This document shows, piece by piece, positions 3,304 to 61,647 of a stretch of DNA of 64,000 bases (positions within the stretch are counted from its first letter, which is position 1; the number at the start of each line of letters is the position of its first letter). The DNA is taken from sequence record NC_048747.1. One strand, given 5' to 3'. The notes under the pieces are model-generated. The model made no database searches and had not been told where the DNA came from. It worked only from the letters and a program-made list of their open reading frames with translations. A program made the position numbers and the translations under genes.

Positions 3304-3331
3304 AATTATCTCTCTTTTATTATCGGTGGTA

Positions 3332-3805
3332 TTACATGCTGTCCAAGAAGTGTGCGTATTGTTTACGTACCGTCTCGAATTGATCTTTAGTTTGTTCGTT
3401 GAAGCGAGGGTCCACAGTATCGGTCATGATCATACGGATGATCTCAAGATCTTTGTAAAGGATGTGTTCTTTACCTTCACGTTCGATTTGGTTGTACTGT
3501 AAAGCTTCTAGAGCGCGCATGTGAGTCTCGTAAGGCTCACGTGGGTTTGTACCTAATGAAAGTACGTATGATTTGTTGTCGTTGTCATATACTAACTCAG
3601 TAGGGCGAGTACGGTCACGTACCACCATAAGAGTTAGTTCGTGGTCGTTTGTTTCAGTATTGTAAACTGCTACTGTAAAACGATCACCAGTATCGAACCA
3701 ACGCATAAATAGTGATTCAACACCGTCTACGTTGTATTGACGGTAAACTACAATGCAAAGTACTAGAGCAAGAAGAGTGATTGGTAGAATAACTAATAGG
3801 TTCAT
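3332..3805 (-). CDS. Hypothetical membrane-anchored protein
   Basis: N-terminal TM helix LLVILPITLLALVLCIVVY. Confidence 0.6.
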   Translation of the reverse strand: MNLLVILPITLLALVLCIVVYRQYNVDGVESLFMRWFDTGDRFTVAVYNTETNDHELTLMVVRDRTRPTELVYDNDNKSYVLSLGTNPREPYETHMRALEALQYNQIEREGKEHILYKDLEIIRMIMTDTVDPRFNEQTKDQFETVRKQYAHFLDSM

Positions 3806-3809
3806 GGAC

Positions 3810-3917
3810 TTAATCCTTATTGAAAAGTTTGTTGAAATTATTTAAAGCTCGCCACCAAGTTCGAATAAACTTAATGAAGTAGTAGGCGACGAATAGAAAG
3901 AAAAATAGTTTAATCAT
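3810..3917 (-). CDS. Small membrane protein, 35 aa; not in ORF track
   Basis: MIKLFFFLFVAYYFIKFIRTWWRALNNFNKLFNKD*; GAGG RBS upstream; fills the gap between terminator and next gene. Confidence 0.55.
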   Translation of the reverse strand: MIKLFFFLFVAYYFIKFIRTWWRALNNFNKLFNKD

Positions 3918-3935
3918 GATAACCTCACTTGCTCT

Positions 3936-3963
3936 AAAAAGATAGGAGGGAGTTCCTCCTATC
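3936..3963 (-). terminator. Intrinsic terminator
   Basis: GATAGGAGG/CCTCCTATC 9-bp stem followed by TTTTT on the minus strand. Confidence 0.6.
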
Positions 3964-3978
3964 GAATTACTTTAGCGT

Positions 3979-9199: not shown

Positions 9200-10052
9200 T
9201 AATGATACTCCGGTTCTTAGGTTTCATGCCTTCGTAATACATGCGGTAGATCGTTTCGGCGATCTCACCCACTAGAATATTGCCGTCTTTGTTTTTGTCC
9301 AAACCACGGTTTTGACGATAACCAACACTGCCTTCTTGGAATAAAACTTCGTCTAGAGCTTTACCCACGTAAGCCGGATAGAGAACGCTCAAGTAAAAGT
9401 CTTCTAGATTACGCATCGGTTTACGACGAGCACGCATGTCGAAGTAAGGCAACACACATTTCTCTAGTTGTTCGATTTGACCCATCTTACGGATTTCGTC
9501 TAACTTGAATCCTAGGTCTTGTGCGGCTGGTGCCATGAACTGTATTAGACCAAAGGCTTGACTACCTGCTGCGTTTTGAATAGAAGGGTCGAAAGTACGA
9601 CCTGATTCAAATGCCATGATCGACATTACGTAGTCACCAACGTGGTGTTCGTAACCACGAGCTTCTACCCACTCTTTAACAATGCGAGTGAATTCAGGAC
9701 AGACTCGTTCAGACCAAGCCAGATCTAAATCAGGTTGACCGTTAAAGCGACGGCTCGCCAGTACTAGGTTGTCTAGAGCTGCTTGACTACCTTTCCCCCA
9801 GATACCGTCCACACGACCGATGTAGAAGCCTGTTAGTTGAGCATTACGTTGGAATCCCTTCACTACGTCAATGGCTTTTGACCATGCCGGGATGTCCACT
9901 AGTTCTTCTTTACTTGCAACGACATTAAAAAGACCAAGGGCAGCCATACGGCTACCCTTACCCCAAATGCCGTCAATGCTGCTGTTGTACGTTCCAGCAA
10001 TTAGACAACCTAACTGGATACGTTTTACAGCGCCAATTAACGCGAATGACAT
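9192..10052 (-). CDS. Modular endolysin: peptidoglycan-binding repeats + lysozyme-like lytic transglycosylase domain
   Basis: Two DGIWGKGS PG-binding motifs; catalytic-type MAFESG followed by AFGLIQFM. Confidence 0.8.
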   Translation of the reverse strand: MSFALIGAVKRIQLGCLIAGTYNSSIDGIWGKGSRMAALGLFNVVASKEELVDIPAWSKAIDVVKGFQRNAQLTGFYIGRVDGIWGKGSQAALDNLVLASRRFNGQPDLDLAWSERVCPEFTRIVKEWVEARGYEHHVGDYVMSIMAFESGRTFDPSIQNAAGSQAFGLIQFMAPAAQDLGFKLDEIRKMGQIEQLEKCVLPYFDMRARRKPMRNLEDFYLSVLYPAYVGKALDEVLFQEGSVGYRQNRGLDKNKDGNILVGEIAETIYRMYYEGMKPKNRSIINE

Positions 10053-10054: not shown

Positions 10055-13000
10055 TTAATTACCTCGATAGATATCGATCATTTGTTTTGTTGAGTGAGTA
10101 ACTAACTCGTTAGTTACCAGTTTGTCACGAAGACTAAGTACCATTCGGTTGAACAGAGATTTGAAAGAGAACAGGATTTGAATCTTGCGACCATCTTTCG
10201 TAAAGTACTCGTTCGGGAAGATGTTCCCAACCGTACCTTTCATCTGGTTACCAATAACGAACTTATCAACGGTGGAGGTTTCAATGAACTCTTCCACAAA
10301 GACTTCGATAGAGACTTGTCCCGGCTCAAGAGATTCACGCATACCACGGCTGCCTGCCACGTTACCTGTAACAATACCGTCACCAGTAATAGCTGCTGCA
10401 CGTTTACGTAAGCGGTCGTGTTTAGCCACGAACTTACGTAATGGTTCTGACATGTCTTCTAAGTTACCGTTATAGCGAACATCGATCTTCACTACCTTAC
10501 CATGGTGATTACTTTTCTCTTGACGAGTTCCCATGCGGTCCAGAACACCGAAATCATCTTCAGGATCTTCTTCTACACCAACCAAGGACGCATCCTCGAT
10601 GTGACATAAAATCGTATCGTAGTCTACTTCATCACCAATATCCACGTGCATCTTCAGACCTTGGTCAAAGGCTAAGTAGAACTTATTACCCAAGATGTAG
10701 GATGTTTTGGTTTCTTCTGCAAACTCTTTAGAGATTTCGATTGAGTCTTCGAACGTGAACTGGTTCTCGATAAGTGCAATACGAGTCATCACACCACACT
10801 TCCAAACTACTTGGCGTGGGTTAGCGACATCACGTTGGAAGTAGACTTCATCCCAACCGAGAATCTCACCCGCTTTGAAAGTATCTCCAGCGATTAAATC
10901 CGTGACACGATTATGTCGGTGGACTTCACCTGCCGCGTCACCTAACTTGATACCCAATGGGTAGGTATCGATAGTCCCATCTTCGTATTCAAGTTTAATG
11001 CCTTCCGAAGTTACTTCTAAAACCTTGCCGTCTTGTTTAGCGGGTTTAGAGTAAAGTTCCGAAGTACGGTGAGCAACCACCAAGTCGTAAGGAGAACGCA
11101 TGATGTTAGGTGTGTAGTTAACCGCACTGGTACCCTGTGAGTGCTGGACTCCTGAGAAGAGGGTTCGTTTAGGGTCATCTTTGTTTGCTCCCGGCATGAG
11201 GTTCATAGTAACTGAACCTAAACCAGCGTTACCCACATCACGACTCAAATCCACGTTACCACGGAAATCAGCAATCTTAGGGTTTGACGTAGTGTAAGTT
11301 ACGTAACCTACTTTACTCGAGTCTTTACCGGCTTCAGAGATCACCCCTTTGTAAGTTGGTAACTGACCGCGAGTACGACGAACCATCGATACATCGTTAC
11401 GACCGTTATTACCACCAAAGGTAACCGTTTCTTGCTCCTTCAACTCATGGGCAGGGTTAACTTCCTGTACCATGTCAACAGCCGTGTCTTTCAAACACGC
11501 TTCCATCATCACTGACTCAGGATTCAGGTCAAACGTAGCACGACCATCCATTGCCTTACTCCAATACTGGCGGGCAGACGATGTCATCTGGTGATAAATA
11601 GAACCAGCGAAAGATTCGTAACCAATGAAACGTTGCTCCTTGATCTCGACTTCATGTTCGTGCTGTTCAGTGCGTAGCATCTCCGTCGCTTCAATTAACA
11701 AGTAATCAAAACTGGTAGCGTGACCTAAACGTTTCAGTTCATCTCGTGTAATTGGGTCGATGAACATGTCGAACATGTTAGTCATCTCTTGGAAGTGAGA
11801 TGGTTTGACTTTCGGGTTATCGATGGCGGTTACCCAGATACCTGGGTCGTTCATATCCACGCGGTTAAAGGAGTGTAAGTTATTTAACTTAGTCATCCCA
11901 CCAAACACCAATGAGGTCATTGGGTCACGTCGATTGAATACCAGGGTTTCGTCAGCACAACGTAAAGCAAACTCATCTGCTTCTAACTTAACTCGAGTCC
12001 CACCCGGAATCACCTTAGGTTCAACCTTAAGGATCTTCAACAGTTCATCAAAACCAAAGTAGTAACTCAACACCACACCCATTGGGAAACGGTAACCATT
12101 AATGTTAACGTTCGCCGTATCCATCGGTGCTTTCTTAATATCGATACCTAAGTAAGCTTCAATAGGACCTAGGTCTTCTTTACCTGCTTTTAAGTTACCG
12201 TATTCGTCAATGGTTACTGGGGTCTTACCTTTGAAACCAATGACTGCTGAAGTTGGAGTGAGTTTCGATTCCAAAGCTGGATCACGTTTAATGATCTCTT
12301 TGACATCAAACACAAACTCAACGTCTTTAGTATTGATTCCTTTAAAGCGACGAGATAATGCGGTAAATGTGCGAGGAAGAGCAAACTGGTTACTGTAGGT
12401 GTTACCTACGAATAATTCAAAGTCATCCTTCAATGCACGTTTACGGACCTGTTTAGACAACCAGAGGTCATAATCGTCCGCAGCCATTTTAGAACGACTG
12501 ATGATCAGTTTGCGACCATAGTAAGAGTTCAAACCAACTCGGTAGTCATCCATCTTACGAATAGGTAAGTCCATGCGTTGTAAAGCTTTGGTTCGCTTCT
12601 TACCGTCTACGGTAAATGTACCATCCTTATTAACACGAGCAATACGGAAGTAACGTGTAACCGGTTTACCGCCTACTGGATGGAACTGAACCTTAAACAC
12701 GTCATACGTACCGTCAACGTTGTGCACGGTTTCTTGTTCAAAGTTGGTTACACAAATACCCGCTTGCTGTACTGCGATGATGGCATTCACCATGTCACGC
12801 ATCATGAAGTGTTCTACGTAACCATTCTTCAAGTGAGTAACGGTAGACTGAAGATAAGACGGGTCTTGAACACCAACCATTTCTGGAGCCACTTTACTTG
12901 GCAAGTCGCGCAACAGTTTCTCGTCAATACGCATGAACTCTTCTAAAGTCTGACCATTCGGCATAGCGAGATCTTTATAGCGTTCCGCTTGACGTAGGAA

Positions 13001-14416
13001 AAAGTCTTGTTGAGACTTAGTCAACTGACCGTCACGCGCCTTTCGTTCAATAGCTCGGCGGATACCCGCCTCTGGGGATTCATCCACCATACGACTATGA
13101 CTGGTTGGTTGGAGTACTTCTTCCGTCACGAACTCGCCGTCATCTATATCGTCGGTCCAGCTTTCGACAGTTTCTTGAGATCCAGTTGTTTCTGAATCTG
13201 ATCCTGCACCACTTCCGCGTGGTTCTTCTCCTGACTGTCCAGGAAGTCCATCAACGTCAGTTTTACGTCCATTGAGAAAATCATTGAACAAATCAGAATC
13301 ATCAGCAGAATCCAGGTCGGTAATCTCCTCACCAAGTTCTTCTTCTTCGGATTCATGTGACCCGATCGGTCCATCCCCGTTTTCTTTTGTACTAGCCTCT
13401 TTAGACGTTGTGTCATCGTCATGTTGTTCTACCTCCTCTACGTTAGCTTGAGCGATCATTCGCATGAACACTGCTAAAGTACGTTTCACAGCGTTTTGTC
13501 GCTGAGAGGTATTGTAATCGATTTGTTCTTCTCCGTCAACCTTTGTGACCTTGTTTAATTCATCTAACCAAGAACGCAATAAGCCAGGTTTTAAGATTAC
13601 CGCTTTACCGTGTTTAGTGAACACGATGTTGAGACGTTCTAAGGCGTCGTCACTCAGGCGGTTGAACAAAGAGTATTCGTATTTACCACTCAGCCAAGCA
13701 AACCAGTCTAATAACCAGAAAGCCCCTGTGCGTTTTAAATCTCGAATAGCTTGGTCGTTAGGACCGGTGAATTCCAGTTCCCCTTCTTTATTCGTTTCAA
13801 AGCACTTTTCGTAATGACGGAAATACTCAGTAAACTTAGTAAAGATAGGGACTTGGTTAGGTAACTCCATACGGAAGAACAGTTGACGTTTATTGCCTTC
13901 CGCATTTTGATTAACTACGTCTAACAGACTTGCTAACTGGTTATAGCTCTTATCAAAGGCCAGGAAGCGGTTAGGGACGTAGTTCCACTTTAACACACCC
14001 AATGCGTTGTTAACAACAACAAGTTCCTTAGAACGCCCCATAGGGGTCTTAATGTTGCGTGCGTATTTGTAGCGATAGTGTCCGTTACGATATTTCTGAA
14101 TTTGTTTGCGCTCATCCAGAGGAGCAGGTCTTGCTTTACCTGATTCAATCACGTAATGACTATCGAACCCGATGTTAACCACATCAGGATAGTTATTGAT
14201 CAAAGGCTCGTGGTTACTAGGACCTAAGTCATTATTGTGTTTAGGGTAATAAAAGAGAATTGAATCACGTGGGAGTTCAATATCACTTAGGGAATGGAAC
14301 GCAGGATTCGTTAAATCGTTTTTACGACGAAGCACGTACTCTTTGAAAAACAAAGGATACATTGCTTCTAATCCATCTACTACTTCACCTAAGTAAAAAG
14401 GTTGTTGGTCTTGCAT
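10055..14416 (-). CDS. rpoB: Virion RNA polymerase beta subunit, N-terminal/major part (phiKZ gp178-like)
   Basis: FTFEDSIEIS (bacterial YNFEDS) and DKFVIGNQMKG (bacterial DKMAGRHGNKG, both catalytic Lys); acidic insert at about aa 325-445. Confidence 0.9.
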   Translation of the reverse strand: MQDQQPFYLGEVVDGLEAMYPLFFKEYVLRRKNDLTNPAFHSLSDIELPRDSILFYYPKHNNDLGPSNHEPLINNYPDVVNIGFDSHYVIESGKARPAPLDERKQIQKYRNGHYRYKYARNIKTPMGRSKELVVVNNALGVLKWNYVPNRFLAFDKSYNQLASLLDVVNQNAEGNKRQLFFRMELPNQVPIFTKFTEYFRHYEKCFETNKEGELEFTGPNDQAIRDLKRTGAFWLLDWFAWLSGKYEYSLFNRLSDDALERLNIVFTKHGKAVILKPGLLRSWLDELNKVTKVDGEEQIDYNTSQRQNAVKRTLAVFMRMIAQANVEEVEQHDDDTTSKEASTKENGDGPIGSHESEEEELGEEITDLDSADDSDLFNDFLNGRKTDVDGLPGQSGEEPRGSGAGSDSETTGSQETVESWTDDIDDGEFVTEEVLQPTSHSRMVDESPEAGIRRAIERKARDGQLTKSQQDFFLRQAERYKDLAMPNGQTLEEFMRIDEKLLRDLPSKVAPEMVGVQDPSYLQSTVTHLKNGYVEHFMMRDMVNAIIAVQQAGICVTNFEQETVHNVDGTYDVFKVQFHPVGGKPVTRYFRIARVNKDGTFTVDGKKRTKALQRMDLPIRKMDDYRVGLNSYYGRKLIISRSKMAADDYDLWLSKQVRKRALKDDFELFVGNTYSNQFALPRTFTALSRRFKGINTKDVEFVFDVKEIIKRDPALESKLTPTSAVIGFKGKTPVTIDEYGNLKAGKEDLGPIEAYLGIDIKKAPMDTANVNINGYRFPMGVVLSYYFGFDELLKILKVEPKVIPGGTRVKLEADEFALRCADETLVFNRRDPMTSLVFGGMTKLNNLHSFNRVDMNDPGIWVTAIDNPKVKPSHFQEMTNMFDMFIDPITRDELKRLGHATSFDYLLIEATEMLRTEQHEHEVEIKEQRFIGYESFAGSIYHQMTSSARQYWSKAMDGRATFDLNPESVMMEACLKDTAVDMVQEVNPAHELKEQETVTFGGNNGRNDVSMVRRTRGQLPTYKGVISEAGKDSSKVGYVTYTTSNPKIADFRGNVDLSRDVGNAGLGSVTMNLMPGANKDDPKRTLFSGVQHSQGTSAVNYTPNIMRSPYDLVVAHRTSELYSKPAKQDGKVLEVTSEGIKLEYEDGTIDTYPLGIKLGDAAGEVHRHNRVTDLIAGDTFKAGEILGWDEVYFQRDVANPRQVVWKCGVMTRIALIENQFTFEDSIEISKEFAEETKTSYILGNKFYLAFDQGLKMHVDIGDEVDYDTILCHIEDASLVGVEEDPEDDFGVLDRMGTRQEKSNHHGKVVKIDVRYNGNLEDMSEPLRKFVAKHDRLRKRAAAITGDGIVTGNVAGSRGMRESLEPGQVSIEVFVEEFIETSTVDKFVIGNQMKGTVGNIFPNEYFTKDGRKIQILFSFKSLFNRMVLSLRDKLVTNELVTHSTKQMIDIYRGN

Positions 14417-14418: not shown

Positions 14419-14595
14419 TTACTCCAAGCCGCTAGTTAGAGCGCGTAATAAGAATTCGTGAGGCTCAACAATTGGTTCGTATAAGAACGACCCTGTACCA
14501 GTGATGTAGTAACTACGTTCACCCATACGTTTCAACGCTTGCTTAATCGAATCTTCTGCCTCAATACCATTACTGTTCAATTGGTCACCATCATA
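14419..14595 (-). CDS. rpoC: Exon 2 of virion RNAP beta' N/catalytic subunit (58 aa); not in ORF track
   Basis: YDGDQLNSNGIEAEDSIKQALKRMGERSYYITGTGSFLYEPIVEPHEFLLRALTSGLE*; joined to exon 1 it gives GGD-YDGD; stop is 2 nt from the beta ATG. Confidence 0.9.
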   Translation of the reverse strand, partial: YDGDQLNSNGIEAEDSIKQALKRMGERSYYITGTGSFLYEPIVEPHEFLLRALTSGLE

Positions 14596-16312
14596 CGGAT
14601 ATGTTCAGTGCGCCTTTGCACCCGGTAATTTAATACCTGCTCTGGGATTTCCCCAGATGCCCAGACTATATCTTCGCCATAGGTCTTAGACCCTTAGGCA
14701 TCCCACACTTCCCCCAACATCGGCTAGGTGTTGGAGTACAGGCTGGCTAAGCCTTAGTCGTTGAACTTTCCCCGTACCCGAAGGTCCTTAGGGGAGTAGC
14801 TGCTAGATCACCCATTATTAGAGCCCTTAGTGTTATTGTTTAACTTAGGCTATCTGCTGTGTTATTTCTGCCTTTCGGCACCGTCAGATCGTTTTGTGAA
14901 CCCTTTCAGGTCATCTTGTGGTCTCAGCAGCTTTAGGGACTCCCAGCAATTCACGGGAATACGCATTAGGACTTTCGTGCCTAATGGGACTTGAATTAGT
15001 TCAAGGTTTTAATTAAATAACGTTGTTTATACTTTCTCTTTTCTCGAACTACGAAGGTAATAGTTCTAGAATTTATATCAGGGATGATTTGGATTAATTC
15101 TTTTTTACCATAACAGATGTGGGTTTTATTTTTTGCAAGGTCCTGTATTTCATAGACCTTTGTCGTGGGTTGCAACCCCCTACGATAAATTTCTTTGTCG
15201 TAGTCGGTAGGTGTGTTCCATGAGTCACCCGGTTTTCTAAAGATATGCCACTGCACAATTCCGGAAGTCTTGTTCTCCAAAACCTTTCGTATCGTTCCTC
15301 TCCCCCCACCGTTATTTTTTATAAACTCGTCGACGTTTCGCCATTTAAAAACTTCACCGGTTTTTAAATTCATGCTTTCAAAGTTAGTGTACTTAACTTT
15401 CTTTAAATCTAACAATTCTTCAAAGGTTGTGTTATCGGAAGTCGCCTTGATAACGTACCTCCCTTTATAAGTCTTATTAGGGGTATTGAAAGCGTTTATT
15501 ACACAAGTGGGATTTACTCCTAACACGTTTGCAAAGTTAGAAAGACTCGGATAAGAAGATGAGTTTTTTGTTAACTTATCATAAACATCAACAGAAATAA
15601 CCTGTTTATTATTTCCATCCTTATACGCACCTTTCATCATATTCTCATATGGGGTCAACCATTGCAGGTTAAGTTGGGAGAAATCTTGTTTGTCACCATT
15701 TTTGTGATCGACGTGCATGTTTGGGTAATCTTCAGGTGGGTCGCAGAATGTCAACCCTATTAAACGGTGTGTCAATAACCTATTATCTTTATTAACAACA
15801 TCACATCTCGTAAAAGGGTAAAAATTAGAATTATCTTCACCTTCCTTACCAAGATAGGGTAAACGGTACCGATCTTTCTTAAGCTGGTAAACTTCACCTT
15901 TAGAGTTAATGACATTTAACTCTTCCCCAGGGATAAAGTAAAAACCCTTTATACTTGGGTGTTCTATTTTTTCTTTATAGTACGGAAAAAGGTTAGTGGG
16001 GGTAAAGTTCAGTTTATCTTTGTCTTTAAAGACAACTTTCATCTTATCCCAGTACTCTCTAGGTAAATAACACCTATTCCAATATTCCATGATTGCTTTA
16101 CCTAAAAACACCTTCACACCTGATTCAATGAAAAAGGTTCCTTCGGAAAGGTCTTCAAATAAAACCACTTCTTTATTTTCACGATATAAATTCAAATCAT
16201 CTTTTAAAGTATATTCACGCGCATTAAATTTAAAATTCACTTCCATTACCAGCTCCTTATTTTAACGTTTGTTATAAAATAAGTTAGGTAAGGACTTGAC
16301 ACTAATTCCTTA
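14596..16312 (-). mobile_element. Group I self-splicing intron (1717 nt, IA-like) carrying an HNH homing endonuclease
   Basis: 5' exon ends in U and the intron ends in G. P1 is AU|UAA-GGAA-UUAGU with a U.G wobble at the splice site. Conserved elements: P AATTGCTGGGA (14941-14951), R GTTCAACGACTA (14755-14766), S AAGATATAGTCT (14663-14674), with P7 GACTA/TAGTC. Splicing restores the frame. Confidence 0.92.
14996..16246 (-). CDS. Intron-encoded HNH homing endonuclease
   Basis: THRLIG...HVDHKNGDKQD...NLQWLTPYENM HNH motif; NUMOD4-like segment before it; three short NUMOD1-like C-terminal repeats; AAGGAG RBS; visibly more AT-rich than the flanks. Confidence 0.88.
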   Translation of the reverse strand: MEVNFKFNAREYTLKDDLNLYRENKEVVLFEDLSEGTFFIESGVKVFLGKAIMEYWNRCYLPREYWDKMKVVFKDKDKLNFTPTNLFPYYKEKIEHPSIKGFYFIPGEELNVINSKGEVYQLKKDRYRLPYLGKEGEDNSNFYPFTRCDVVNKDNRLLTHRLIGLTFCDPPEDYPNMHVDHKNGDKQDFSQLNLQWLTPYENMMKGAYKDGNNKQVISVDVYDKLTKNSSSYPSLSNFANVLGVNPTCVINAFNTPNKTYKGRYVIKATSDNTTFEELLDLKKVKYTNFESMNLKTGEVFKWRNVDEFIKNNGGGRGTIRKVLENKTSGIVQWHIFRKPGDSWNTPTDYDKEIYRRGLQPTTKVYEIQDLAKNKTHICYGKKELIQIIPDINSRTITFVVREKRKYKQRYLIKTLN

Positions 16313-17743
16313 ATCGCCACCTAGGCGTTCTAGCCGGGAACCATCGACCGACATTGCATCGAAGTAACTCGGACGACCTGTCAGTATTGGGTAGTTGTTT
16401 AGACGTTTGTCTTCTTCCCAGAACTCATCCAGAAGAACACGAGGTTTGGACTGAATCGTAGTACGGAGATTGATCTTAGAAGGATAGATAGAACCCACAC
16501 CAGTAATCGGGTAACGAGTGATTTGACTCATTCTCGATTCGATCAAGTTACCGCAACTGATGTAGAACAACTCCATGTAAGTTAAAGGACGGAGATGTTT
16601 AGGATCGCGATCACCAATTTCGGATTTATCACCAACAATCTTAACCGTTTCACCGTCATCATAAATGAGACCCATGTAGAGTCCTTCAATCATGATCGGT
16701 TTAGCTCGCAGGTGACTGTCTTTGAATCCGTTAAATAAACGGGTTAATCCTTCAGGAGTCATCCATTTGTCAACAATCTTAGTGTCGACTTCTTTGTACT
16801 CGTATTCGAAGGTTTTCGGGTTAACCAACTTAGCAAGGTTGGAACCAATAGTGAAGACGTTTTGCACCCAACCATTTAACATCCCATAACGACATGTGTA
16901 CTGGAACTCCAGCATGGCTTGATACAAACCGATGTCCGTGGTATTAACGTCGACGTTATTCGGAGCATCTGCATCTTCCACCGATACGTGGCGAGCTGAG
17001 ATGACGTTACGAGTACCACCAACCACACCACGAGTTGCGACACGTTTCTGCCAGAAACCCGTCTTACCTTTCATCAACCCTTGGATGTAAGTGTCGATGT
17101 CATTGAAGTTGGACTGAGCGCCCCAACGTAAGTTATCGTAAACAGGAGAGTTCTCTTCACCATCCCCGACTACCACAGCTTTGGTACGGAATAACAGTTT
17201 ACGGTAGTATTCGTTAATCTCTGGCTCGATAGTACGATCATCCGGAGAGAACTGCACGTCACGTAAACCTGCCGGGATAACGATCACTTTATTGCAGAGT
17301 GCTTGAGGGCGATAAGTGTGGAACAGTTCGATCTTCTTTTTACGACGGAAAGATTCCGTTAACTTCGGCTCTAACTCATTGAAGTATTGCATGAAGAAAC
17401 TATAACCGGTCTCTCCGTCCAACAAGTTGGATTTTATGAAGTCTTTAGTCTCGCTATCCCAGACGGCGTATTCCGTCCCTTTGATTATACCCAAGTATAA
17501 AGATTTGAGTGTAATCATGGCTTTGAAATACGTAGGGTTAAAGATAGGTAGTTTAACGTCAATGTAAGATAACTTACGATCACGTTCCGCACTACCAACA
17601 CGTCCGAAGGTTTCTACCGAATATAACCCGTCTGGGTGCAGACTGGTAGAAGAACCCTCGTTTACATCCGCTGAGGACACGGGTCTCATCAGCGACCAAG
17701 CGATCTTGCTTGGGTTTAATAAAGAAACGTTAGTCGGTTTCAT
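16313..17743 (-). CDS. rpoC: Exon 1 of virion RNAP beta' N/catalytic subunit (phiKZ gp180-like); spliced product 535 aa
   Basis: HPDGLYSVETFG (DGLFCARIFG), VIPAGLRDV (VLPPDLRPL), MKGKTGFW (KGKQGRFR), RYP; ends at the first Asp of DxDGD. Confidence 0.9.
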
Positions 17744-17764: not shown

Positions 17765-20700
17765 ATGGCAAGTGAATCAGATTATGATTGGGGAGATGAT
17801 TTCCTTGATGGAGATATGGATTTTGACTTTGATTTTGACGGGAATAAAGATCAAGGATTCTTAAAGTCAGTCTCCAAAGGATTTCTCTCTGCCCTAAAAT
17901 CTAATACCGTCGGAGATACCGACACGAAAATTAAAACATTAAGACGTATCCTTCCTAGTTCTTTTGGTACAACCTTTGACTTCTACCGTGAACTGGATCG
18001 TAAGAAGCAAGAAGCATTTAAAGAGTTTAAAGAGAACAGCGCCGATCTCATGGGAGATCTGGCTTTTCTTTCTGGTTCTTTAAGTGAGTCGTTGCGTGAT
18101 CGTCTACCCAATAAAATCGTTGACGGACTCGAAGAGTTCAGTAAAAAAGATTTTAGTGATTGGGAAAAGACCGGAGAGTTCCGTGAAGAACAACTCCGCA
18201 TGGAAGATGTCGAAGAAGACGCTCAACAGCGTATGTTGGAGGTGTTAGAACAACAAGCTGTGGTGAACGTAGAATCCACGGACGCCATCACTCGAGTAAT
18301 GAGTAGCGTTGGTTCTAAGCAATTGTCGGCAGGGTTACAGAACAACGAACAGTTGTTTGAAGTGAATGCTAACCTACAACGTCTGTACCAATACCAGATG
18401 AAGGTCCATGGTCAGCGTGAGGCAATGAAGCTAAACTTGATGACACGTCAATACTTAACTAATGCTAAGTATTACAAATTCATGGAAGCTTCTCAACACC
18501 GTATTATTAAAGAGATCAAAGACGTTGTTAAAAACACGGCAATGTCTGATTTCGAAAAGACGTCGGTACTGCAAGCCAGTAAAGGTCGTTTACGTGATAA
18601 CATCCTTAAGTCGACGTTCTCTAGAGCAGGTGGTTTTGGTGAAGCGTTAGGGAACATCATCAGTAAAGATGGTATTAACGACTCTTTGTCTATCATGACA
18701 CAATTGGTTGGGGATGTGCGTTTCGCTTCTGAGATGTCTGCTGACGCCGGCGTGACCCCAGGGGAGATCATTGGTTCGATGCTTGGTCAGTTTGTTGTAG
18801 ACCGAGGACCAGAGTTCTTTGAAACAAAAGCAGGTCGTGACTTAATCGCTAAGGTGCGCACCAAGTACCCAGATCAAGCTAAGCTTTTCGACAAGACTCA
18901 AAAAGAATTACGTCAGTTCGGTGATTTGCTTTCTTACTCCACTAAAGCGATGGGATCAGTGATGGGTCGTCATTATCAGGAAACTGGTATGATGGACCAA
19001 CCTCATATGACTTATGAGGAATACTTAGAAGAACTTCCACCTAATGCTAAGCCGATGCCTAAGTTATTATGGCAAGCGGTCCGTAAAGCCACTGGCGCGG
19101 CAGGTAGTGCGTTTAACTTAGTTGGGGAGAACTATCAAGAATCTCAAGGTAGTGTTTACCAGATTAAAGAGAAGTCTCTTAAAGACCTTAAGAACAACTC
19201 GGTTTGGTCAGTTCATGATTCTCGTAGCTTGACTGAAGAAATCCCTGCACTACTTAGTGAAATCCATCACTCTATTGAGAAGATTCGTACAGGTTCAGAT
19301 GACGTGCCAAGATTACGTTACGATTACCGTACTTCAAGGGTGACAACCACTGATCGTTTGAATCAACAAATCCAACGCATGATCACTCCTGAATGGGAGT
19401 TAAACACTTATGCTGACGCAGCCAAGTCAATAGCAGGGGATATTGATAAGGATAAAGAGTTAAGTGAGAGTGCGAGCAACGCATTAGCGCAACGACTCGC
19501 AAGGGAAGCCGATAAAGGGAACGTCTTTAACCCTTACGACTATATCGGTATAGGTACTGATGAATACATGAACGAAGAGCAAGCCGCTGAAATAGAAGCG
19601 CTTGTAAGACGTCGTTTTGGCATTACCGATGAAATGATCGAGCGTACCCAAGACAGTACGTTAGATGGCCTTATGGCTCGTTTAACTGCCCCTACCCCAG
19701 AAGGGCAAGAGCTATTACATCGTTTATCACTTCGTACTGATTCATTAAAGAACTACACACCTAACATCGCTGACAAAATAGACTTGGTCCGTAGCCTTGG
19801 TTTAGATGAAGGATTAAAAGCATCTGGGTTTATTAGTGTTGACCCTGACTCTAATAAAGAGATCGTTAATCAGGAATTGATTTGGAAACAACTCAATAAC
19901 CGCATCAACGGTAATCCGATTAATGAAGACTTAGGTATTGGTAGTGATGAACCTTATCCTACTAAAGATGATCTATATCAGATATTTCATAAAAGAAATA
20001 ATAAGTCATCTCCTAATCTATCTAACTTATCTATTCCTTCCCCCCTCCCTTTGCAGGAAGAAGTTAGTGGTGCTCTCAGCAATATCATCGACACCTTAGT
20101 TAAAATTCAAGACAACACCAAAACCCTCCCAGCGATTGGAGTTAATGCGGACCCTATGAAAGCATTAACCATGGACCCGCTGTTAGACTTGGTGAAAGGC
20201 ACTAACACCACCTTAGCTGAAATCAGTCAGTCTCAGTTGGAACAGATCTCTTTGTTGAAGAAACTGAAGTCAGTGTCTACGGTAGGGATCGATGAAGGCC
20301 AAGCGTCCAATGAGATCACCGACCAACAGCGTATTGAAGAACGAGAGAAACAATCGTTATTAGAACGTTTACGCGCCCTCGTTCCTGCTGATGTATTTAA
20401 CCAAGGTGTGGAGGCGTTAATCGCTAACAAACCGATGGTGTTGGGTGGTTTATTGGGTGGTCTCGGCGTTACTGCGATGAGTAACCCTAAAGCAGCCGCT
20501 TTACTGGCAGGTGGTGCAGCGGTAGCTACCGCTTACGGTCAGTTAAGTAAGCTAGGTGGTTCAGGTTCCACCCCTGCTGAAGATGAAGACCTTTACGATG
20601 AAGACGGTAATGAAGTCTTATACGCAGCTAAGAAAAACGCAGGTGACTACTACGACCAAGCTTCCCGTAAAGTAATCAAGTCTTGGGGTGATATCAAAGG

Positions 20701-23700
20701 TACAGTCATAGACGTCTCTCAAGGGGCTTCTGAGATCGCTGCCAGCGGTAAACGCCTTGCAGGTCGACTATTCGGTCCTGACGGCAGAGAGATCATCCTA
20801 GACGGTTTACATCGATTCAAGTCATTCGTTAGTAAAACGTTCCAAGCAATCGACCCAGTAGGTAAAGCTAAGTCCTTAATCGACAAAGCTAAAACTGGAT
20901 TGGACCAAATGGACGTTTACATGAAAGGAGACCCAGATCCCGTTCTCACCAGCCGTGGGTTCAAGAACGGTTGGTACTTTGACGAGGAAGGGAATGAGAT
21001 CCTTGGTTGGCGAGATATCTTAGGCCCAGTTTATGACCAAGAAGGGAATTTGCTGGTTTCTGTGGAAGACCTTAACAGCCTCCAAACCATCGGTGGAGTT
21101 TCACTGGGTAAAGCCAGAGATGCCACAGGTACGTTTGGTAAGATGGTGAGTAAAGGTGCGAAGTGGTTACAAGAAAACGGTCGCGAACGTTTAGGGTCAG
21201 CCATCTTAGGTTCTGAACACGTTATCGAACGTGCGGGCAATATAGGTGGTGATCGTTACGAACCTATCACCCATCGCTTGGATTCTATCTACGGACTCAT
21301 AGCCGGACATTGGGGTCACGACACCAAGATGCCGGGCATGGAGAAAGTCAGTCCTAAGGTGAAGTCATTCATTGACGACTTAGGAGCTGGAGATCATGAA
21401 GACGAGAAGCCAACTGAAGGTATTCGTTTGAATTCTCTTGCTGACAAAATCCGTCGTAAGAAAGAAGCTAAGCAAGCACAGTTCCAAGATTCTGTTATTG
21501 ATATTGCCGAGAGTCTTAACCCGGATGATAAAGACGGTAAGAAGAAACAAGACGGTGGCATCTTAGGCAGACTCCTTGGGATGGCCGGCGGTGGTATCTT
21601 TGCTCTGATGAAGAAATTCTTCACACTAGGTATCGGTGGTTTTGCTAACTTAATGAAACTGAACGGAACGATCACTAAAGGGTTGTTCAGCTTAGGTAAA
21701 TTGTTAAGCGGTGCGCTACTGGGTCGTAGAGCAAAAGATGCAGCCCTGGATGGTTTAGGTGGTGTCGACGGTGATGATCGTCGTGGTAAACGTGGTAAAC
21801 GAGGCAGATTCGGTCGCTTTTCTAAACTTGGTCGTATGAGTAACATGACGAAGTTCGGATTAGGCGGCGCGCTGATGCTTGGTGGAGACATGGCTATCGA
21901 CGCGGCTAGGGACGGACTTGATGTAGAGGAAGGTTCTACTACAGACAAACTCTTGGACTACGGTTCTGTGGGTCTAGAAGCGGCCGGTTGGTTAGCAACG
22001 GGTTCAGCGGTCGCAGGTATGGCGGGGACATCGTTAGGAGGTATTGCAGCGGCTTCTGCACCATTCTTGTTAAACCCAATTACATTGGGGGTAGCAGGTG
22101 TCGGTCTAGCAGGTTACGCCGCATACAAGTTCTTCAGTTCCGACGACCTTACCATTCAACAAAAGCTTCGTATGGCACAGTACGGTATTGACGACCAAGA
22201 TGAAGAACTGATTAACGACGTATTACGTCTTGAGACGCAATTACAGGATTACATTCAGTTATCTGGTAGTAATGCTGGTTTCTCTAGAGAAACGCCGTTA
22301 GAACGCTTTATATCGCCATTCTTGAATAACCGCAGGACGCAACAAGGTCAACAAGATACACTGCAATGGTTCAGCCTTCGTTTCAAACCTGTGTATTTGT
22401 CTTACTACGCTCAATTCCAAAAACTGGACATTAATAAGTTTGAGGATTACGATAAGCTTAAGAACAACACTGTTCCGCTGATCGCTAAGCAAACACATGA
22501 CGAGGCAGGGATGATGAACCCATCTCCTTACCGCATCCAACTATGGATTAGTCGTGACACGTATGCATTGAGTGCGGAAGAAACCAAAGCACAAGTTGCT
22601 CGTTACTTAAGCGAGATGAAGGAAGAGTACGACACCGTCAATCTTAACTCCAAGAAACTGTCAGAAGACCTCTCCATCGATACCGTGAACTCTAAGATCA
22701 AGAAAGTAGAGAAAGCGGGAATGTTGGAAAGTGCTTGGATGCGATTGACTGGAGATCACAACGACGAAGAGAAACAGAAGAAGCTGGATACTTGGTTTAA
22801 ACAACCAGAAGTAATTAAGGGGATTGACATCTCTGACATGCTTCCTGGGGATAAACCAGTTGAGGTTATCACGGCTTTCCGTTTAGCCGCTTACGGTAAC
22901 GAAGATAACATGCCTTGGCGTGTGGAAGCGGTACTTAAGTTAGAGCGTTGGATGGAACGTTACACTTCTTACTCTAATAGTCGTTCTGAATTCACCGGTA
23001 CAGTAGAGGAATTCTGGGCTACCTTCAGTACAGCATTCCGAGTCACCTCTAGAAAAGGACGTGAGCTAGCGATTCGTTGGTTCCAGTACCGATTCTTACC
23101 AGTGTGGTTGGCATGGCACCAGGTGTGTCGTAACCAACGTGGTGGTGACCCGTCTAAAGTGTGGCGTACGTTGTCAGCAACGGCGCAGTTCCGTTTTGCT
23201 CAGCAAGTTGTGGAACTTAAAGTCTTTGTTGACGAACGCGTGAAGGGATTGTTTAGTGTAGATGAAGCACCGTTTGAAGGTGAACGTTCCGAGGGAATGA
23301 CCACTCGTATTAAACGCATGCTCCAAGCACTGGAAGTCAAAGCCAACCAAGCTAGACTGAAAGACCCTGAACTAGAGCAAAGCCGTACCGTAAAGGCTCC
23401 AGATCGTACCGACCAATCGGTGTACCGTTTGCCGGACAACTTGGAAATCAATAAACCTAAGAATGCTCCAGACATTTCAAACCAGTTCGGTCGTAGACAA
23501 CCGGGTCCTGTTCCTGAAATGACTAGTGACCTAAGTAAGGTGAAAGTCGACGTTAATCGAGACATCGAAACTGACGTTAAACTTAAGCCAGGTGATGACA
23601 AAGGTGTGTCCTTAAATAAAGACCAGATCACAAAAGTTCTTATTCGTGAGATGGTTAAGAAAGGTTACGATGATCCAAGACAGATTGCCGAGATGTTGGC

Positions 23701-24745
23701 ACTCACTGACTACGAAACTGGTGGCTACCGTAATACCGCAGAAAACATGTGTTACACAAACGCAGCACGAGCCCGTAACATCTTCCGTAAACTGAAGCAG
23801 TTCAACATTCCACAGATCCAAGAGATCATCCGAAAAGGCCCTGTTGCCTTCGCCAATGCCGTCTATAACGGGTGGTTAGGTAATACGGACTCCCCTAACG
23901 ATGGTTGGTTGTATCGTGGTCGTGGGTTGGTGCAGCTAACAGGTAAGGATAACTACGAGCGTGCAGCCAGTGACTTGGGTATCGACATTGTCAATAACCC
24001 TCGTATGGTTTCTGAGGACCCTGAGACCATGGCTAAGACTGCCATCTGGTTCTTTGAAAACTCACCACAAATGCAGTCCATCAAAGAACACGGTGACTTC
24101 AGCTTTGCAGCTCGTGGGTTAAACGGCGGTAAAGCGTTGCCGGGAATGGGTAAACGTGAACGTCTCTACAACGACTACTTGAGCAATTTGTTGAACGGTG
24201 AACTCACTAAAGACTTAATGCCAAGTGAGGAACTGGAAGGTGAAGACACTCCAAACACACCTGAAGGTAAAGTGGACCGTGTCCCAGAACACGTTCGTCG
24301 TAAGTTAGAAGGCAAACGTTCTAAGTTAGCGAGTAATGTCCCTACGGAAATGTTAAAGAAAGAAGAGCAAGCGTTAACATCAGCTAAGCCTACTACCCCA
24401 CCGTCTCTTGCAGACAACACGGCAGCAGCAACTAGTGCAGTTAAGCAAACTCGCAATCCTTCTTTATACAGTAACAAACCGATTCCTGATCTAAGTAAAA
24501 CGCCAGCTCCTGCTAAACCTCAGGCCGATGAGTACAACATTGCTAAGCAAGCGATTGAAGCTCAAGTTCGATCTAAGGTGAAAGAGGTTCCTCAAGAACC
24601 ACTTAAAGTAGAAGCAGCGATGAAGCCAGAGACGGAAGCAGCGTTGACCTCACAAACTCAAATCCTACAAGGTATCTTGAACGCCATCAATGCCAGCAAT
24701 GACATTGCAGCACGTAAGCGTCAAGATTCAGTAGCTTTGAACTAA
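17765..24745 (+). CDS. Tail tape-measure-like / tail-associated lysin (phiKZ gp181-like) with C-terminal GH19 domain
   Basis: 2326 aa, divergent from beta' as in phiKZ; acidic N-terminus; Gly/Ala-rich hydrophobic segments; YRGRGLVQLTGKDNY GH19 motif near 23912. Confidence 0.8.
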   Translation: MASESDYDWGDDFLDGDMDFDFDFDGNKDQGFLKSVSKGFLSALKSNTVGDTDTKIKTLRRILPSSFGTTFDFYRELDRKKQEAFKEFKENSADLMGDLAFLSGSLSESLRDRLPNKIVDGLEEFSKKDFSDWEKTGEFREEQLRMEDVEEDAQQRMLEVLEQQAVVNVESTDAITRVMSSVGSKQLSAGLQNNEQLFEVNANLQRLYQYQMKVHGQREAMKLNLMTRQYLTNAKYYKFMEASQHRIIKEIKDVVKNTAMSDFEKTSVLQASKGRLRDNILKSTFSRAGGFGEALGNIISKDGINDSLSIMTQLVGDVRFASEMSADAGVTPGEIIGSMLGQFVVDRGPEFFETKAGRDLIAKVRTKYPDQAKLFDKTQKELRQFGDLLSYSTKAMGSVMGRHYQETGMMDQPHMTYEEYLEELPPNAKPMPKLLWQAVRKATGAAGSAFNLVGENYQESQGSVYQIKEKSLKDLKNNSVWSVHDSRSLTEEIPALLSEIHHSIEKIRTGSDDVPRLRYDYRTSRVTTTDRLNQQIQRMITPEWELNTYADAAKSIAGDIDKDKELSESASNALAQRLAREADKGNVFNPYDYIGIGTDEYMNEEQAAEIEALVRRRFGITDEMIERTQDSTLDGLMARLTAPTPEGQELLHRLSLRTDSLKNYTPNIADKIDLVRSLGLDEGLKASGFISVDPDSNKEIVNQELIWKQLNNRINGNPINEDLGIGSDEPYPTKDDLYQIFHKRNNKSSPNLSNLSIPSPLPLQEEVSGALSNIIDTLVKIQDNTKTLPAIGVNADPMKALTMDPLLDLVKGTNTTLAEISQSQLEQISLLKKLKSVSTVGIDEGQASNEITDQQRIEEREKQSLLERLRALVPADVFNQGVEALIANKPMVLGGLLGGLGVTAMSNPKAAALLAGGAAVATAYGQLSKLGGSGSTPAEDEDLYDEDGNEVLYAAKKNAGDYYDQASRKVIKSWGDIKGTVIDVSQGASEIAASGKRLAGRLFGPDGREIILDGLHRFKSFVSKTFQAIDPVGKAKSLIDKAKTGLDQMDVYMKGDPDPVLTSRGFKNGWYFDEEGNEILGWRDILGPVYDQEGNLLVSVEDLNSLQTIGGVSLGKARDATGTFGKMVSKGAKWLQENGRERLGSAILGSEHVIERAGNIGGDRYEPITHRLDSIYGLIAGHWGHDTKMPGMEKVSPKVKSFIDDLGAGDHEDEKPTEGIRLNSLADKIRRKKEAKQAQFQDSVIDIAESLNPDDKDGKKKQDGGILGRLLGMAGGGIFALMKKFFTLGIGGFANLMKLNGTITKGLFSLGKLLSGALLGRRAKDAALDGLGGVDGDDRRGKRGKRGRFGRFSKLGRMSNMTKFGLGGALMLGGDMAIDAARDGLDVEEGSTTDKLLDYGSVGLEAAGWLATGSAVAGMAGTSLGGIAAASAPFLLNPITLGVAGVGLAGYAAYKFFSSDDLTIQQKLRMAQYGIDDQDEELINDVLRLETQLQDYIQLSGSNAGFSRETPLERFISPFLNNRRTQQGQQDTLQWFSLRFKPVYLSYYAQFQKLDINKFEDYDKLKNNTVPLIAKQTHDEAGMMNPSPYRIQLWISRDTYALSAEETKAQVARYLSEMKEEYDTVNLNSKKLSEDLSIDTVNSKIKKVEKAGMLESAWMRLTGDHNDEEKQKKLDTWFKQPEVIKGIDISDMLPGDKPVEVITAFRLAAYGNEDNMPWRVEAVLKLERWMERYTSYSNSRSEFTGTVEEFWATFSTAFRVTSRKGRELAIRWFQYRFLPVWLAWHQVCRNQRGGDPSKVWRTLSATAQFRFAQQVVELKVFVDERVKGLFSVDEAPFEGERSEGMTTRIKRMLQALEVKANQARLKDPELEQSRTVKAPDRTDQSVYRLPDNLEINKPKNAPDISNQFGRRQPGPVPEMTSDLSKVKVDVNRDIETDVKLKPGDDKGVSLNKDQITKVLIREMVKKGYDDPRQIAEMLALTDYETGGYRNTAENMCYTNAARARNIFRKLKQFNIPQIQEIIRKGPVAFANAVYNGWLGNTDSPNDGWLYRGRGLVQLTGKDNYERAASDLGIDIVNNPRMVSEDPETMAKTAIWFFENSPQMQSIKEHGDFSFAARGLNGGKALPGMGKRERLYNDYLSNLLNGELTKDLMPSEELEGEDTPNTPEGKVDRVPEHVRRKLEGKRSKLASNVPTEMLKKEEQALTSAKPTTPPSLADNTAAATSAVKQTRNPSLYSNKPIPDLSKTPAPAKPQADEYNIAKQAIEAQVRSKVKEVPQEPLKVEAAMKPETEAALTSQTQILQGILNAINASNDIAARKRQDSVALN

Positions 24746-46200: not shown

Positions 46201-47559
46201 TTAATGGATAGTAGGTGAGTTCAACAAGTCTTGTTCAGTAATCACGTTAGTAGACTCTAAATCTGCCGGCTTCACGTTAGTGTACGGTGCAAACAGTTCA
46301 GTTTCTACATCGAACAGGTGTTGGTGTAACGCGTCGTAGAACGTACCTGAGTAAGTTTGACAACGTTTTGCAATTAGCTGTTCTTCGTGTGGTAAGATAA
46401 AGGTTTCACCTTCTTGTGTAGTGTGCAGGTACATATTAGAAATATCCAGCTTCACTTCACGCGACATGTTAGTTGAGATGTCGTTGATGGTTTCCAGCAT
46501 CCAAGAAATCTCTTCATCAATCTTAGCACGACCTGCTTCGCAAACATCGTCGAATCCCCAAACACGAACCGTGTGTTTAGCGATAGGGTGGTGGATAGCA
46601 CGGATGTACAATTGCTCGATTTCTTTGTTCAACACTTCGTAACCAGTATTGTAGTTCAGCAAGTTACCGATAATGATGTTCATGTGATCAATGTGTTCTT
46701 GAATCTTAGACAAAATCTCACGGTCGGTATTATCTTCACCCCATACTGCTAGATCGACTGGGGAGCGTTCGATAACGAAATCTGACTCAGAACGGTAAGG
46801 TTGGAAGTCCAAGCCAAGAGTGATTTTATGATCTTCGATGTTGAGCGAGAACCATAAGTCGTTGTCTTTAACTTGTTCAGTTTTACCTGACCAATCATTG
46901 ACCAGATCACCGATTTTACCCAAGCTGTCCGCAATACGTTTAGCGTTACGGTTAACCACAGTTTCAACGTGTTGTACGTCGCCAGCTGTCATGTCGCCAA
47001 AGTGTTTATCGATCCATTCATCAGATGGCTCCGGAACTACAGCGTTAGGCACACGGTTCACTACCATTGGGTAATGTTTGTTACGGTGTTTGCTGATGTC
47101 TTCCGCTACGTCTTCCATGCTTAAGTTGGCTAGGAACTTAATCAGTTCTTTTAACTTAGATTGATCTTCATAAGTAGTCGCTTCACCCATCCCTTTACGG
47201 ATCTCAGTGAGTTGCTCTAGGATGGTCTTCACCATCACGTTGTAGATCAAGTATTCTACAGGACCACGTTCGTCGAACCACTTCTTGAGTTCTTTCGCTC
47301 CAGCTGGCATTGTTGGGTCGTCAGACTTCAGGTACTCATCTAACTCGACTGGTAGATTAAAGTCTACACGAATGCGAGTCATAGGTAAGTAGGCGTGCTC
47401 ACTGATGGTAATCTCCATATCTTCAGGATCAACACCAGTGTGTGATAAAGCCATCGTCCCATTTTGTACAACCGGCATGACGAATGTACGATCACTGAGT
47501 CCTTCAATAACGTAGACAAACAGTTTCCAAAGTTCGTGGTTAGGTTTTGACTTAGTCAT
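46201..47559 (-). CDS. Hypothetical protein (possibly virion), divergent from the helicase
   Basis: 452-aa ORF. Confidence 0.55.
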   Translation of the reverse strand: MTKSKPNHELWKLFVYVIEGLSDRTFVMPVVQNGTMALSHTGVDPEDMEITISEHAYLPMTRIRVDFNLPVELDEYLKSDDPTMPAGAKELKKWFDERGPVEYLIYNVMVKTILEQLTEIRKGMGEATTYEDQSKLKELIKFLANLSMEDVAEDISKHRNKHYPMVVNRVPNAVVPEPSDEWIDKHFGDMTAGDVQHVETVVNRNAKRIADSLGKIGDLVNDWSGKTEQVKDNDLWFSLNIEDHKITLGLDFQPYRSESDFVIERSPVDLAVWGEDNTDREILSKIQEHIDHMNIIIGNLLNYNTGYEVLNKEIEQLYIRAIHHPIAKHTVRVWGFDDVCEAGRAKIDEEISWMLETINDISTNMSREVKLDISNMYLHTTQEGETFILPHEEQLIAKRCQTYSGTFYDALHQHLFDVETELFAPYTNVKPADLESTNVITEQDLLNSPTIH

Positions 47560-47606
47560 GTCAGTTTCCTTTTTCTTTTTGATTTAAACTATAATAAGAG
47601 GTTAAT

Positions 47607-50372: not shown

Positions 50373-50420
50373 AAAATAAAAGCAACTATAACCTCCTACC
50401 CTGTTCGGGTAGGAGGTTAT
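50371..50420 (-). terminator. CTCCTACC-family hairpin terminator at a convergent junction
   Basis: ATAACCTCCTACCC-tgttc-GGGTAGGAGGTTAT 14-bp stem; TTTTATTTTTT downstream on the minus strand. Confidence 0.7.
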
Positions 50421-50426
50421 TTACGT

Positions 50427-50918
50427 TTATCGCTTTTTAGAGTGGCGTTCTGAAGCATTCATGATCTCAGTTAACATAGTGGTGGTGAGCTCACGGATGT
50501 TAGGGGTTTCGATCATAATGTCTTCTTCAATTTGAGAAGAGATGCGAACGTAATCCATACTGAAGTCCAGCTTGGTATAGAAGAAGCAACCTTGGATACA
50601 GAACTCTTCACGATAAATGTTAATGAGTATGGACAGACATGTGCGAGGAGTGCGGGTTAATGTGATCACACCATTAGGTTCAATTAAGAATAAACCCAGT
50701 AGAATTTGAGTTAGGTTTTGTGGACCCCATTCCTCACTTCCATAAAAGCCGTCTATGAAGCTTTTCGGATAAGTGCGTCTAACGGTAGTGGTGTCTTGAC
50801 CATTGTTGAGTGAAATAACCAACACCCCATAATTACCGTTCATGGACGATTCGATTGAAGAACTGGTTTGTGTGCTAAAGGTAAATCGACGACCTTCAAA
50901 AATAGTTTCTTTGTGCAT
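50427..50918 (-). CDS. Hypothetical protein
   Basis: 163-aa ORF. Confidence 0.55.
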   Translation of the reverse strand: MHKETIFEGRRFTFSTQTSSSIESSMNGNYGVLVISLNNGQDTTTVRRTYPKSFIDGFYGSEEWGPQNLTQILLGLFLIEPNGVITLTRTPRTCLSILINIYREEFCIQGCFFYTKLDFSMDYVRISSQIEEDIMIETPNIRELTTTMLTEIMNASERHSKKR

Positions 50919-61646: not shown

Positions 61647-61647
61647 G

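Follow-up and report, generated by a model that had tools for sequence, protein, structure and literature searches.

A probable mobile group I intron of subgroup IA in the virion RNA polymerase β′ gene of Vibrio phage 2 TSL-2019

The 64,000-nucleotide (nt) stretch of DNA analysed here, referred to as the window, belongs to Vibrio phage 2 TSL-2019 (MK368614 / NC_048747; Gorgonvirinae, Aphroditevirus), and adding 62000 to a window coordinate gives the record coordinate. The laboratory host of the phage is Vibrio alginolyticus. We examined a gene for the β′ N-terminal subunit of the virion RNA polymerase (RNAP), whose reading frame is split by a 1717-nt insert. An earlier note, written from the sequence alone, had proposed that this insert is a group I intron. 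The split gene, the insert, and the β subunit gene all lie on the minus strand. The features of the locus are listed below; here and throughout, a slash within a sequence marks a splice or insertion point.

16313..17743, minus strand: exon 1 of the virion RNAP β′ N-terminal subunit gene, 477 codons, ending in RLERLGGD (GGCGAT)
16310..16312, minus strand: in-frame TAA, the first three intron bases after GGCGAT, which ends unspliced translation after RLGGD
14596..16312, minus strand: group I intron, 1717 nt, delimited by its exact insertion relative to intron-less alleles and by an Rfam match
14996..16246, minus strand: open reading frame (ORF) of an HNH homing endonuclease, 416 amino acids (aa), intron nt 67–1317, between P1 and P2
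14419..14595, minus strand: exon 2, 58 codons (YDGDQLNSNG...SGLE) plus TAA (14421–14419), matching positions 485–539 of PHROG 2986
10055..14416, minus strand: virion RNAP β subunit gene, orthologous to phiKZ gp178 (BLASTP to gp178, E=9e-150)

Including its stop codon, the minus-strand ORF of exon 1 spans 17743..16310, and the last D of exon 1 is the first Asp of the catalytic motif DxDGD. The frame resumes at 14595, 1717 nt past exon 1, where exon 2 opens with TATGATGGTGACCAATTGAAC (YDGDQLN); its first bases, TATGATGGTGACCAATTG, encode YDGDQL. The exon 1 product matches PHROG 2986 with E=4e-200 over profile positions 5–484, and the two exon products tile this single profile, breaking between positions 484 and 485. 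The ATG of the β gene, at 14416, follows the exon 2 stop after a 2-nt gap and starts a protein of 1453 aa, which also weakly matches bacterial RpoB.

The phiKZ orthologue of the split gene is gp180. In tblastn searches, the exon 1 product showed ~33% identity to proteins of phiKZ-like phages (E ~1e-76), with one match per genome, and matches occurred in 310 jumbo-phage records, several of them labelled virion RNAP β′; homologues in OBP, N1M2, and RAY carry this annotation. Furthermore, the gene order gp181 / gp180 / gp178 is kept with phiKZ. Gp180 of phiKZ is a virion-packaged RNAP subunit bearing the Mg-binding DFDGD motif (PMC10612078), and the name "virion RNA polymerase" for the 2 TSL-2019 gene rests on this orthology. 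Pfam searches with the exon-encoded pieces and the β protein returned no match, and a PDB sequence search with exon 1 gave chance matches only; PHROGs and tblastn were informative instead. All coordinates given in the earlier note are correct, namely a 477-aa ORF ending in RLGGD at the in-frame TAA, resumption after 1717 nt with the 58 aa that begin YDGDQLN, and a 2-nt gap to the β gene. Its assignment of the gene to the virion RNAP likewise agrees with the orthology.

In the closest relatives the gene is uninterrupted. The phiKT1019 (535 aa) and pTD1 (536 aa) proteins align without gaps to the joined exons (...RLERLGGD/YDGDQLNSNG...), and the genes of USC-1, Aphrodite1, and 5 TSL-2019 are also continuous; the 1717 nt are therefore a clean insertion. 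The insert starts with UAAGGAAUU, providing the UAA in the exon 1 frame, and ends with ...AUAUCCG, with the terminal G at 14596. Thus, a U occupies position −1 and a G is the last intron base, in agreement with the splice-site rules of group I introns. Moving both splice sites 1 base downstream would yield an identical mRNA, and only the position given above combines the U with the terminal G. The predicted junction GGCGAT/TATGAT restores LGGDYDGDQLN, colinear with the intron-less alleles.

A covariance-model scan, which the earlier note had suggested, yielded a match to the Rfam group I model RF00028 at 15007..14640 (minus strand; 51.7 bits, E=3e-10) that is full-length, covering model positions 1–253. 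A permissive Rfam scan of the 64-kb window (E<0.1) found no second RNA element. The ribozyme core occupies the last ~410 nt of the intron, and its elements, together with the guide sequence near the 5′ end, were assigned as follows.

16285..16296, minus strand: internal guide sequence, intron nt 17–28, AGUCCUUACCUA, pairing with exon UAGGUGGCGAU/U (16323–16312) as P1
14640..15007, minus strand: ribozyme core with P2, P2.1, P3–P9, a long P5 extension, and P7.1/P7.2, from Rfam RF00028 and covariation
14952..14959, minus strand: P3 5′ strand UUCCCGUG, partner 14701–14707, helix 2 of a hand-built structure
14755..14759, minus strand: P7 5′ strand GACUA (guanosine-binding helix), partner UAGUC at 14664–14668, helix 11
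14712..14754, minus strand: P7.1 and P7.2, between P7 and the P3 3′ strand, helices 12–14
14676..14699, minus strand: P8, from the hand-built structure
14640..14659, minus strand: P9, from the hand-built structure
14596..14639, minus strand: 3′ end of the intron, with two small terminal hairpins and the splice site; its tail, ...ACUGAACAUAUCCG/, is similar to ...ACUGAACAUAACG/ of phiKZ

In P1, which has 10 pairs and a single mismatch, G18 faces U(−1) as a U.G wobble. When the 66 nt before the ORF were shuffled, a P1 as good was obtained in 247 of 20000 shuffles (p ~0.012, or 1.2%). The position of P7.1/P7.2 between P7 and the P3 3′ strand is a hallmark of subgroup IA, the usual type in phages. 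Since these helices lie between P7 and the P3 3′ strand in the window intron, it is placed in subgroup IA.

The hand-built structure, with P7 as a pseudoknot, was checked by counting 74 pairs on an alignment of the cores of the window, Photobacterium phage PDCC-1, Vibrio phage VP4B, and Pseudomonas phage EL. In this alignment, 94.9% of the cells were paired and 21 of the 74 pairs were doubly changed. Slid controls gave 30–49% pairing and 1–6 doubly changed pairs, and none of 500 shuffles reached the observed values. P7 is invariant in all four core sequences and equals the Rfam consensus GACUA/UAGUC, where the slash separates the two strands. Helices 12–14, the P7.1/P7.2 region, were 91–100% paired, and helices 12 and 13 contain doubly changed pairs. 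The P5a helix covaries too, but the MAFFT alignment places it one column off, so it was excluded from the count. An RNAalifold fold of the four cores was replaced by the hand-built structure, as it cannot draw the P3/P7 pseudoknot and invented small hairpins. The splice-site pattern, the U.G wobble of P1, and the core with P7, which the earlier note had read from the letters, are thus borne out by U(−1), the terminal G, the 10-pair P1, the covariance-model match, and the covariation.

The ORF between P1 and P2 is preceded by a Shine-Dalgarno sequence, and its HNH motif was located by Pfam and by comparison with I-HmuI.

16253..16258, minus strand: Shine-Dalgarno AAGGAG, separated by 6 nt from the downstream ATG of the endonuclease
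15635..15769, minus strand: HNH motif, aa 160–204 (...HRLIGLTF...VDHKNGDK...NLQWLT..EN)

The product matches PF13392 (HNH_3; E=8e-12, residues 160–204) and PHROG 59 (E=3e-22). The nearest solved structure is I-HmuI (1U3E; E=6.6e-5), with the D-H, N, and N motif residues conserved. Among full-length homologues, the best are encoded by introns that EL and its relatives carry in the same gene (34% identity across 91% of the protein), and weaker ones are found in phiKZ gp179, phiKZ gp56, and the PhiPA3 gp210 region. These observations identify an I-HmuI-like HNH endonuclease, which by homology would nick intron-less alleles near the insertion site. The endonuclease ORF terminates within the P2 hairpin loop. 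Sequestration of the endonuclease ribosome-binding site by the guide sequence was also considered, and it was unsupported by minimum-free-energy folds. None of the other Gorgonvirinae genomes examined showed the full intron, and the uninterrupted genes are those of USC-1, Aphrodite1, 5 TSL-2019, pTD1, phiKT1019, and phiKT1028. This patchy presence among close relatives is a signature of mobility.

Backed by five independent lines of evidence, the insert at 14596..16312 is a real group I intron. We assign a probability of roughly 0.9 to the full interpretation, namely that the virion RNAP β′ N-terminal subunit gene of 2 TSL-2019 carries a mobile group I intron of subgroup IA.

The β′ gene would be transcribed together with the β gene. 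P1 would form in the pre-mRNA between the 11 terminal bases of the exon and intron nt 17–28, placing U(−1) opposite G18, and the core would fold into P3–P9 with P7 serving as the guanosine site. An attack by free guanosine would cleave after GGCGAU; the terminal G (14596) would then take the P7 site, and ligation would give GAU/UAU, rebuilding the D-Y-D-G-D Asp triad. The spliced exons would encode the junction peptide LGGDYDGDQLNSNGIEAEDSIK. Unspliced RNA would halt translation at UAA and give a product of 477 aa that retains a single catalytic aspartate out of three, as the earlier note had recognized in stating that two of the three Mg-binding aspartates would be missing. Splicing is thus predicted to be essential. 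Translation of the HNH protein would start from a ribosome-binding site of its own, located between P1 and P2, and the protein would nick intron-less alleles in co-infections, after which repair would copy the intron into them (homing). By analogy with PhiPA3 gp210, it may also damage intron-less competitors.

Several observations speak against this account. The Rfam score of 51.7 is barely over the RF00028 gathering score of 50 bits, for which the long P5 extension and P7.1/P7.2 are probably responsible. P10 is weak, with 4 pairs and a 2-nt offset. The ORF of ~1.28 kb between P1 and the core means that long-range contacts are needed for folding. The covariation sample consists of four sequences, two of which are ~92% alike. 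Moreover, ONT-cappable-seq of phiKZ detected zero spliced reads for the gp56, gp72, and gp179 introns (bioRxiv 10.1101/2023.10.13.562163).

These points, apart from the sample size, would fit a real intron whose ribozyme works inefficiently on its own in vivo, so that splicing depends on a helper protein or is conditional and throttles the amount of virion polymerase. The homologous phiKZ introns without spliced reads (bioRxiv 10.1101/2023.10.13.562163), the borderline Rfam score, the long ORF separating P1 from the core, and the weak P10 all favor such a scheme. Against it, the core helices are well conserved and covary, and the phage is viable and dependent on DxDGD. Few reads for middle and late transcripts could explain the negative result in phiKZ, whose mature proteins clearly contain the motif despite the undetected splicing. 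Phage IA introns generally self-splice, according to textbook knowledge. On balance, an inefficient ribozyme appears improbable. A permanently split gene without splicing, in which the 477-aa and ~58-aa pieces are made separately around a free-standing HNH gene, would match the RefSeq view of three separate RNAP coding sequences (CDSs) plus a hypothetical protein and the split RNAP subunits of other jumbo phages (PMC7598289), but it is very improbable, given that the Mg-binding triad would be divided between two chains, that exon 2 lacks both a start codon and a ribosome-binding site at YDGD (its annotated TTG start lies past the motif), that a covarying group I core exactly fills the gap, and that the closest relatives have one continuous gene.

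An autonomously splicing mobile intron, our preferred interpretation, has known counterparts. The phiKZ introns, among them the one at gp180/gp179, had been predicted earlier (Mesyanzhinov 2002; Ceyssens 2014; both cited in PMC11512511 and bioRxiv 10.1101/2023.10.13.562163). The phiKZ gp180/gp179 intron interrupts the same gene, and the order gp181 / gp180 / intron with HNH / exon 2 / gp178 is as in the window. In phiKZ, gp180 is followed by gp179 (HNH), ~500 nt with a 92-bit group I core, an unannotated exon 2, and gp178. The phiKZ intron occupies the same codon boundary, D/[FY]DGD (PLGAD/FDGDTV), likewise starts with TAA, and likewise carries its HNH ORF between P1 and P2. Its 3′ tail, ...ACUGAACAUAACG, is akin to that of the window intron, the common pattern being ACUGAACAUA.CG/. 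The gp179 HNH protein is homologous to that of the window (E=8e-21, 28–29% identity) over the N-terminal 245 aa only. The two introns differ in several respects: their cores are ~51% identical, the P5 extension in the window is much longer, the Rfam scores are 92 bits for phiKZ and 51.7 for the window, and the HNH proteins have 357 and 416 aa, respectively. The host clades also differ, the window phage belonging to the Gorgonvirinae of Vibrio.

The intron at gp184/gp185 of EL and its relatives (MIZ-Pa99 and others) resides in the same gene as well. It encodes the closest full-length HNH homologue outside PDCC-1, and its core is 61–67% identical to that of the window, with the same architecture; however, it is inserted 6 nt downstream, at DHD/GDQL. 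Within the same subfamily, VP4B (Tidunavirus) has an intron in the same gene with a core 66–73% identical to that of the window. This intron differs in lacking an ORF, with a length of 497 nt, and in lying 12 nt downstream, at DYDGD/QLN. The VP4B intron (18645–20749 region) is unannotated; the exon 1 CDS stops at the intron TAA after DYDGD, and exon 2 is a separate 59-aa CDS.

PhiPA3, a nucleus-forming jumbo phage, carries an HNH-bearing group I intron, which encodes gp210, at conserved aspartates of one of its virion RNAP genes (PMC11620839). The gp210 intron is the sole family member with a demonstrated function, nicking the empty allele and conferring a competitive advantage (Birkholz et al. 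2024, PMC11620839). The gp210 HNH protein is distantly related to that of the window (27% over 154 aa). In contrast with the window intron, the PhiPA3 intron interrupts the β gene (the gp178 homologue), after a pair of Asp residues, the second of which is equivalent to D675 of E. coli RpoB. The β gene of the window has no PhiPA3-type intron and is continuous through ...NKDDPKR.... I-HmuI, an HNH nicking homing endonuclease encoded in the IA intron of the SPO1 DNA polymerase gene, is the closest solved structure; it differs in its host gene and in its size of 174 aa, compared with 416 aa and extra N- and C-terminal regions in the window protein. The earlier note had counted HNH-bearing introns in the RNAP genes of phiKZ and PhiPA3 as a known class, which is correct. 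It had also allowed that the site and element might be new; this does not hold, as the phiKZ intron lies at the same site and belongs to the same family of introns and HNH proteins. Both its site and its family, the HNH-bearing IA introns, are known; the element adds an unannotated member.

Among 60 IMG/VR loci with an exon 1 homologue, 52 were continuous through the motif and 8 were interrupted. Together with the phage genomes, four insertion positions were found.

Window position, D/xDGD: 2 TSL-2019; PDCC-1 (5′ side only); two metagenomic introns without an ORF, 404 and 375 nt
6 nt downstream, DxD/GD: EL (with endonuclease); one intron without an ORF, 347 nt
12 nt downstream, DxDGD/Q: VP4B (no ORF, 497 nt)
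6 nt upstream, KAPN/ADFDGDQLN: the phiKZ gp55/gp56 intron, in a non-virion polymerase gene

All four positions come after a U-ending codon. Bona fide introns at the window position follow GAT, and the empty Gorgonvirinae alleles carry GAC. The phiKZ gp55/gp56 intron (47000–51200 region) scored 75.6 bits in Rfam, and the annotated gp55 CDS reads into it (…NGQLNN and a stop). A scan of the remaining 2 TSL-2019 genome revealed one further group I intron, at record positions 234465–234856 (minus strand). This intron is 392 nt long, without an ORF, scores 66.5 bits in Rfam, and has a core 59% identical to that of the window intron. It splits the gp55 homologue (the N-terminal β′ subunit of the non-virion RNAP, annotated as gp213 and gp212; E=8e-29 to phiKZ gp55) at SNFNAD/FDGDQMT, a codon boundary equivalent to that of the window intron.

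Matches in two pieces across the motif were observed in Klebsiella phage phiKp_32 (~380 nt extra) and in Aeromonas phages PS1, PS2, and ACP1 (~260 nt extra), which suggests that these phages hold further candidate introns at the hot spot. Aeromonas phage AP1 gave two separate matches within exon 1, and SPN3US-like matches ended at residue 442. One metagenomic jumbo-phage contig, IMGVR_UViG_3300024308_000016, contained a second group I core (65.2 bits, 9766–10047) ~3.8 kb downstream of its β′ motif intron; this core would lie inside the β gene, possibly at the PhiPA3-type site.

We offer a tentative joint reading of these sites, possible rather than probable. The ~20 nt encoding N-A-D-x-D-G-D in both β′-like genes of nucleus-forming jumbo phages would serve as a shared landing pad for one IA intron family. 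Its members would be re-targeted among at least four phase-0 positions 6 nt apart (N/AD/xD/GD/Q, each after a U-ending codon) and would move between the virion and non-virion paralogues, 2 TSL-2019 having one intron in each at the same codon boundary. The window HNH protein would act as an interference weapon against intron-less Vibrio phages sharing the host, as PhiPA3 gp210 does against phiKZ.

The PDCC-1 record requires separate consideration. PDCC-1 is colinear with the window at 85–88% identity, apart from three blocks of 100.0% identity at 14967–16312 (1346 nt), 61207–62551 (1345 nt), and 3311–3975 (665 nt); after these, exact identity extends over at most 287 nt. The first block is exactly intron nt 1–1346. 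In PDCC-1 it begins with the first base of the intron, the preceding codon being GAC instead of GAT, and the 12 nt for YDGD are gone. Once a shared stretch of 17 nt is passed, the core and the 3′ splice site resemble those of VP4B (record 158.9–162.3 kb). No other copy of the catalytic motif is present anywhere in the PDCC-1 genome, and the record as deposited would encode LGGD/QLNSNG, a dead polymerase. We think that the identical blocks are gaps of a reference-guided assembly filled with 2 TSL-2019 sequence; a hybrid formed as a dead-end product of illegitimate homing is a conceivable alternative. The idea that the identical endonuclease block reflects independent endonuclease mobility was dropped, the record being internally inconsistent. 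Because the record is doubtful, we did not use PDCC-1 as evidence of an endonuclease moving without its ribozyme. A literature search found no paper on PDCC-1.

Nothing at the locus is categorically new, and its moderate interest lies mainly in the annotation correction, the four-position hot spot on the catalytic motif, and a natural system in which to test competition. Four insertion points in one 20-nt motif provide a compact case of introns tracking the most conserved, U-ending codons. The theme of RNAP introns known from phiKZ and PhiPA3 is extended to marine Vibrio phages. 2 TSL-2019 (intron and endonuclease), VP4B (intron without an ORF), and the empty USC-1, 5 TSL-2019, Aphrodite1, and pTD1 form a natural test set for intron-mediated competition beyond Pseudomonas phages. 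The intron-less 5 TSL-2019 and USC-1 have the same host as 2 TSL-2019.

RefSeq splits the locus into three "RNA polymerase beta subunit" CDSs and one hypothetical protein. The fragments in GenBank and RefSeq should be replaced by a single spliced CDS, an intron, and a homing-endonuclease gene, and the non-virion polymerase gene, which holds the second intron of the phage, needs the same correction. In RefSeq, exon 2 is represented by a 53-aa CDS (14419–14580) starting at the TTG downstream of YDGD, and the HNH endonuclease ORF (14996–16246) is the "hypothetical protein". The upstream neighbor of exon 1 is a divergently transcribed gp181-like gene of 2326 aa (17765–24745). Its product is labelled "tail fiber protein" in RefSeq, the phiKT1019 counterpart is annotated as an endolysin, and the note on phiKZ gp181 gives a tail-associated endolysin.

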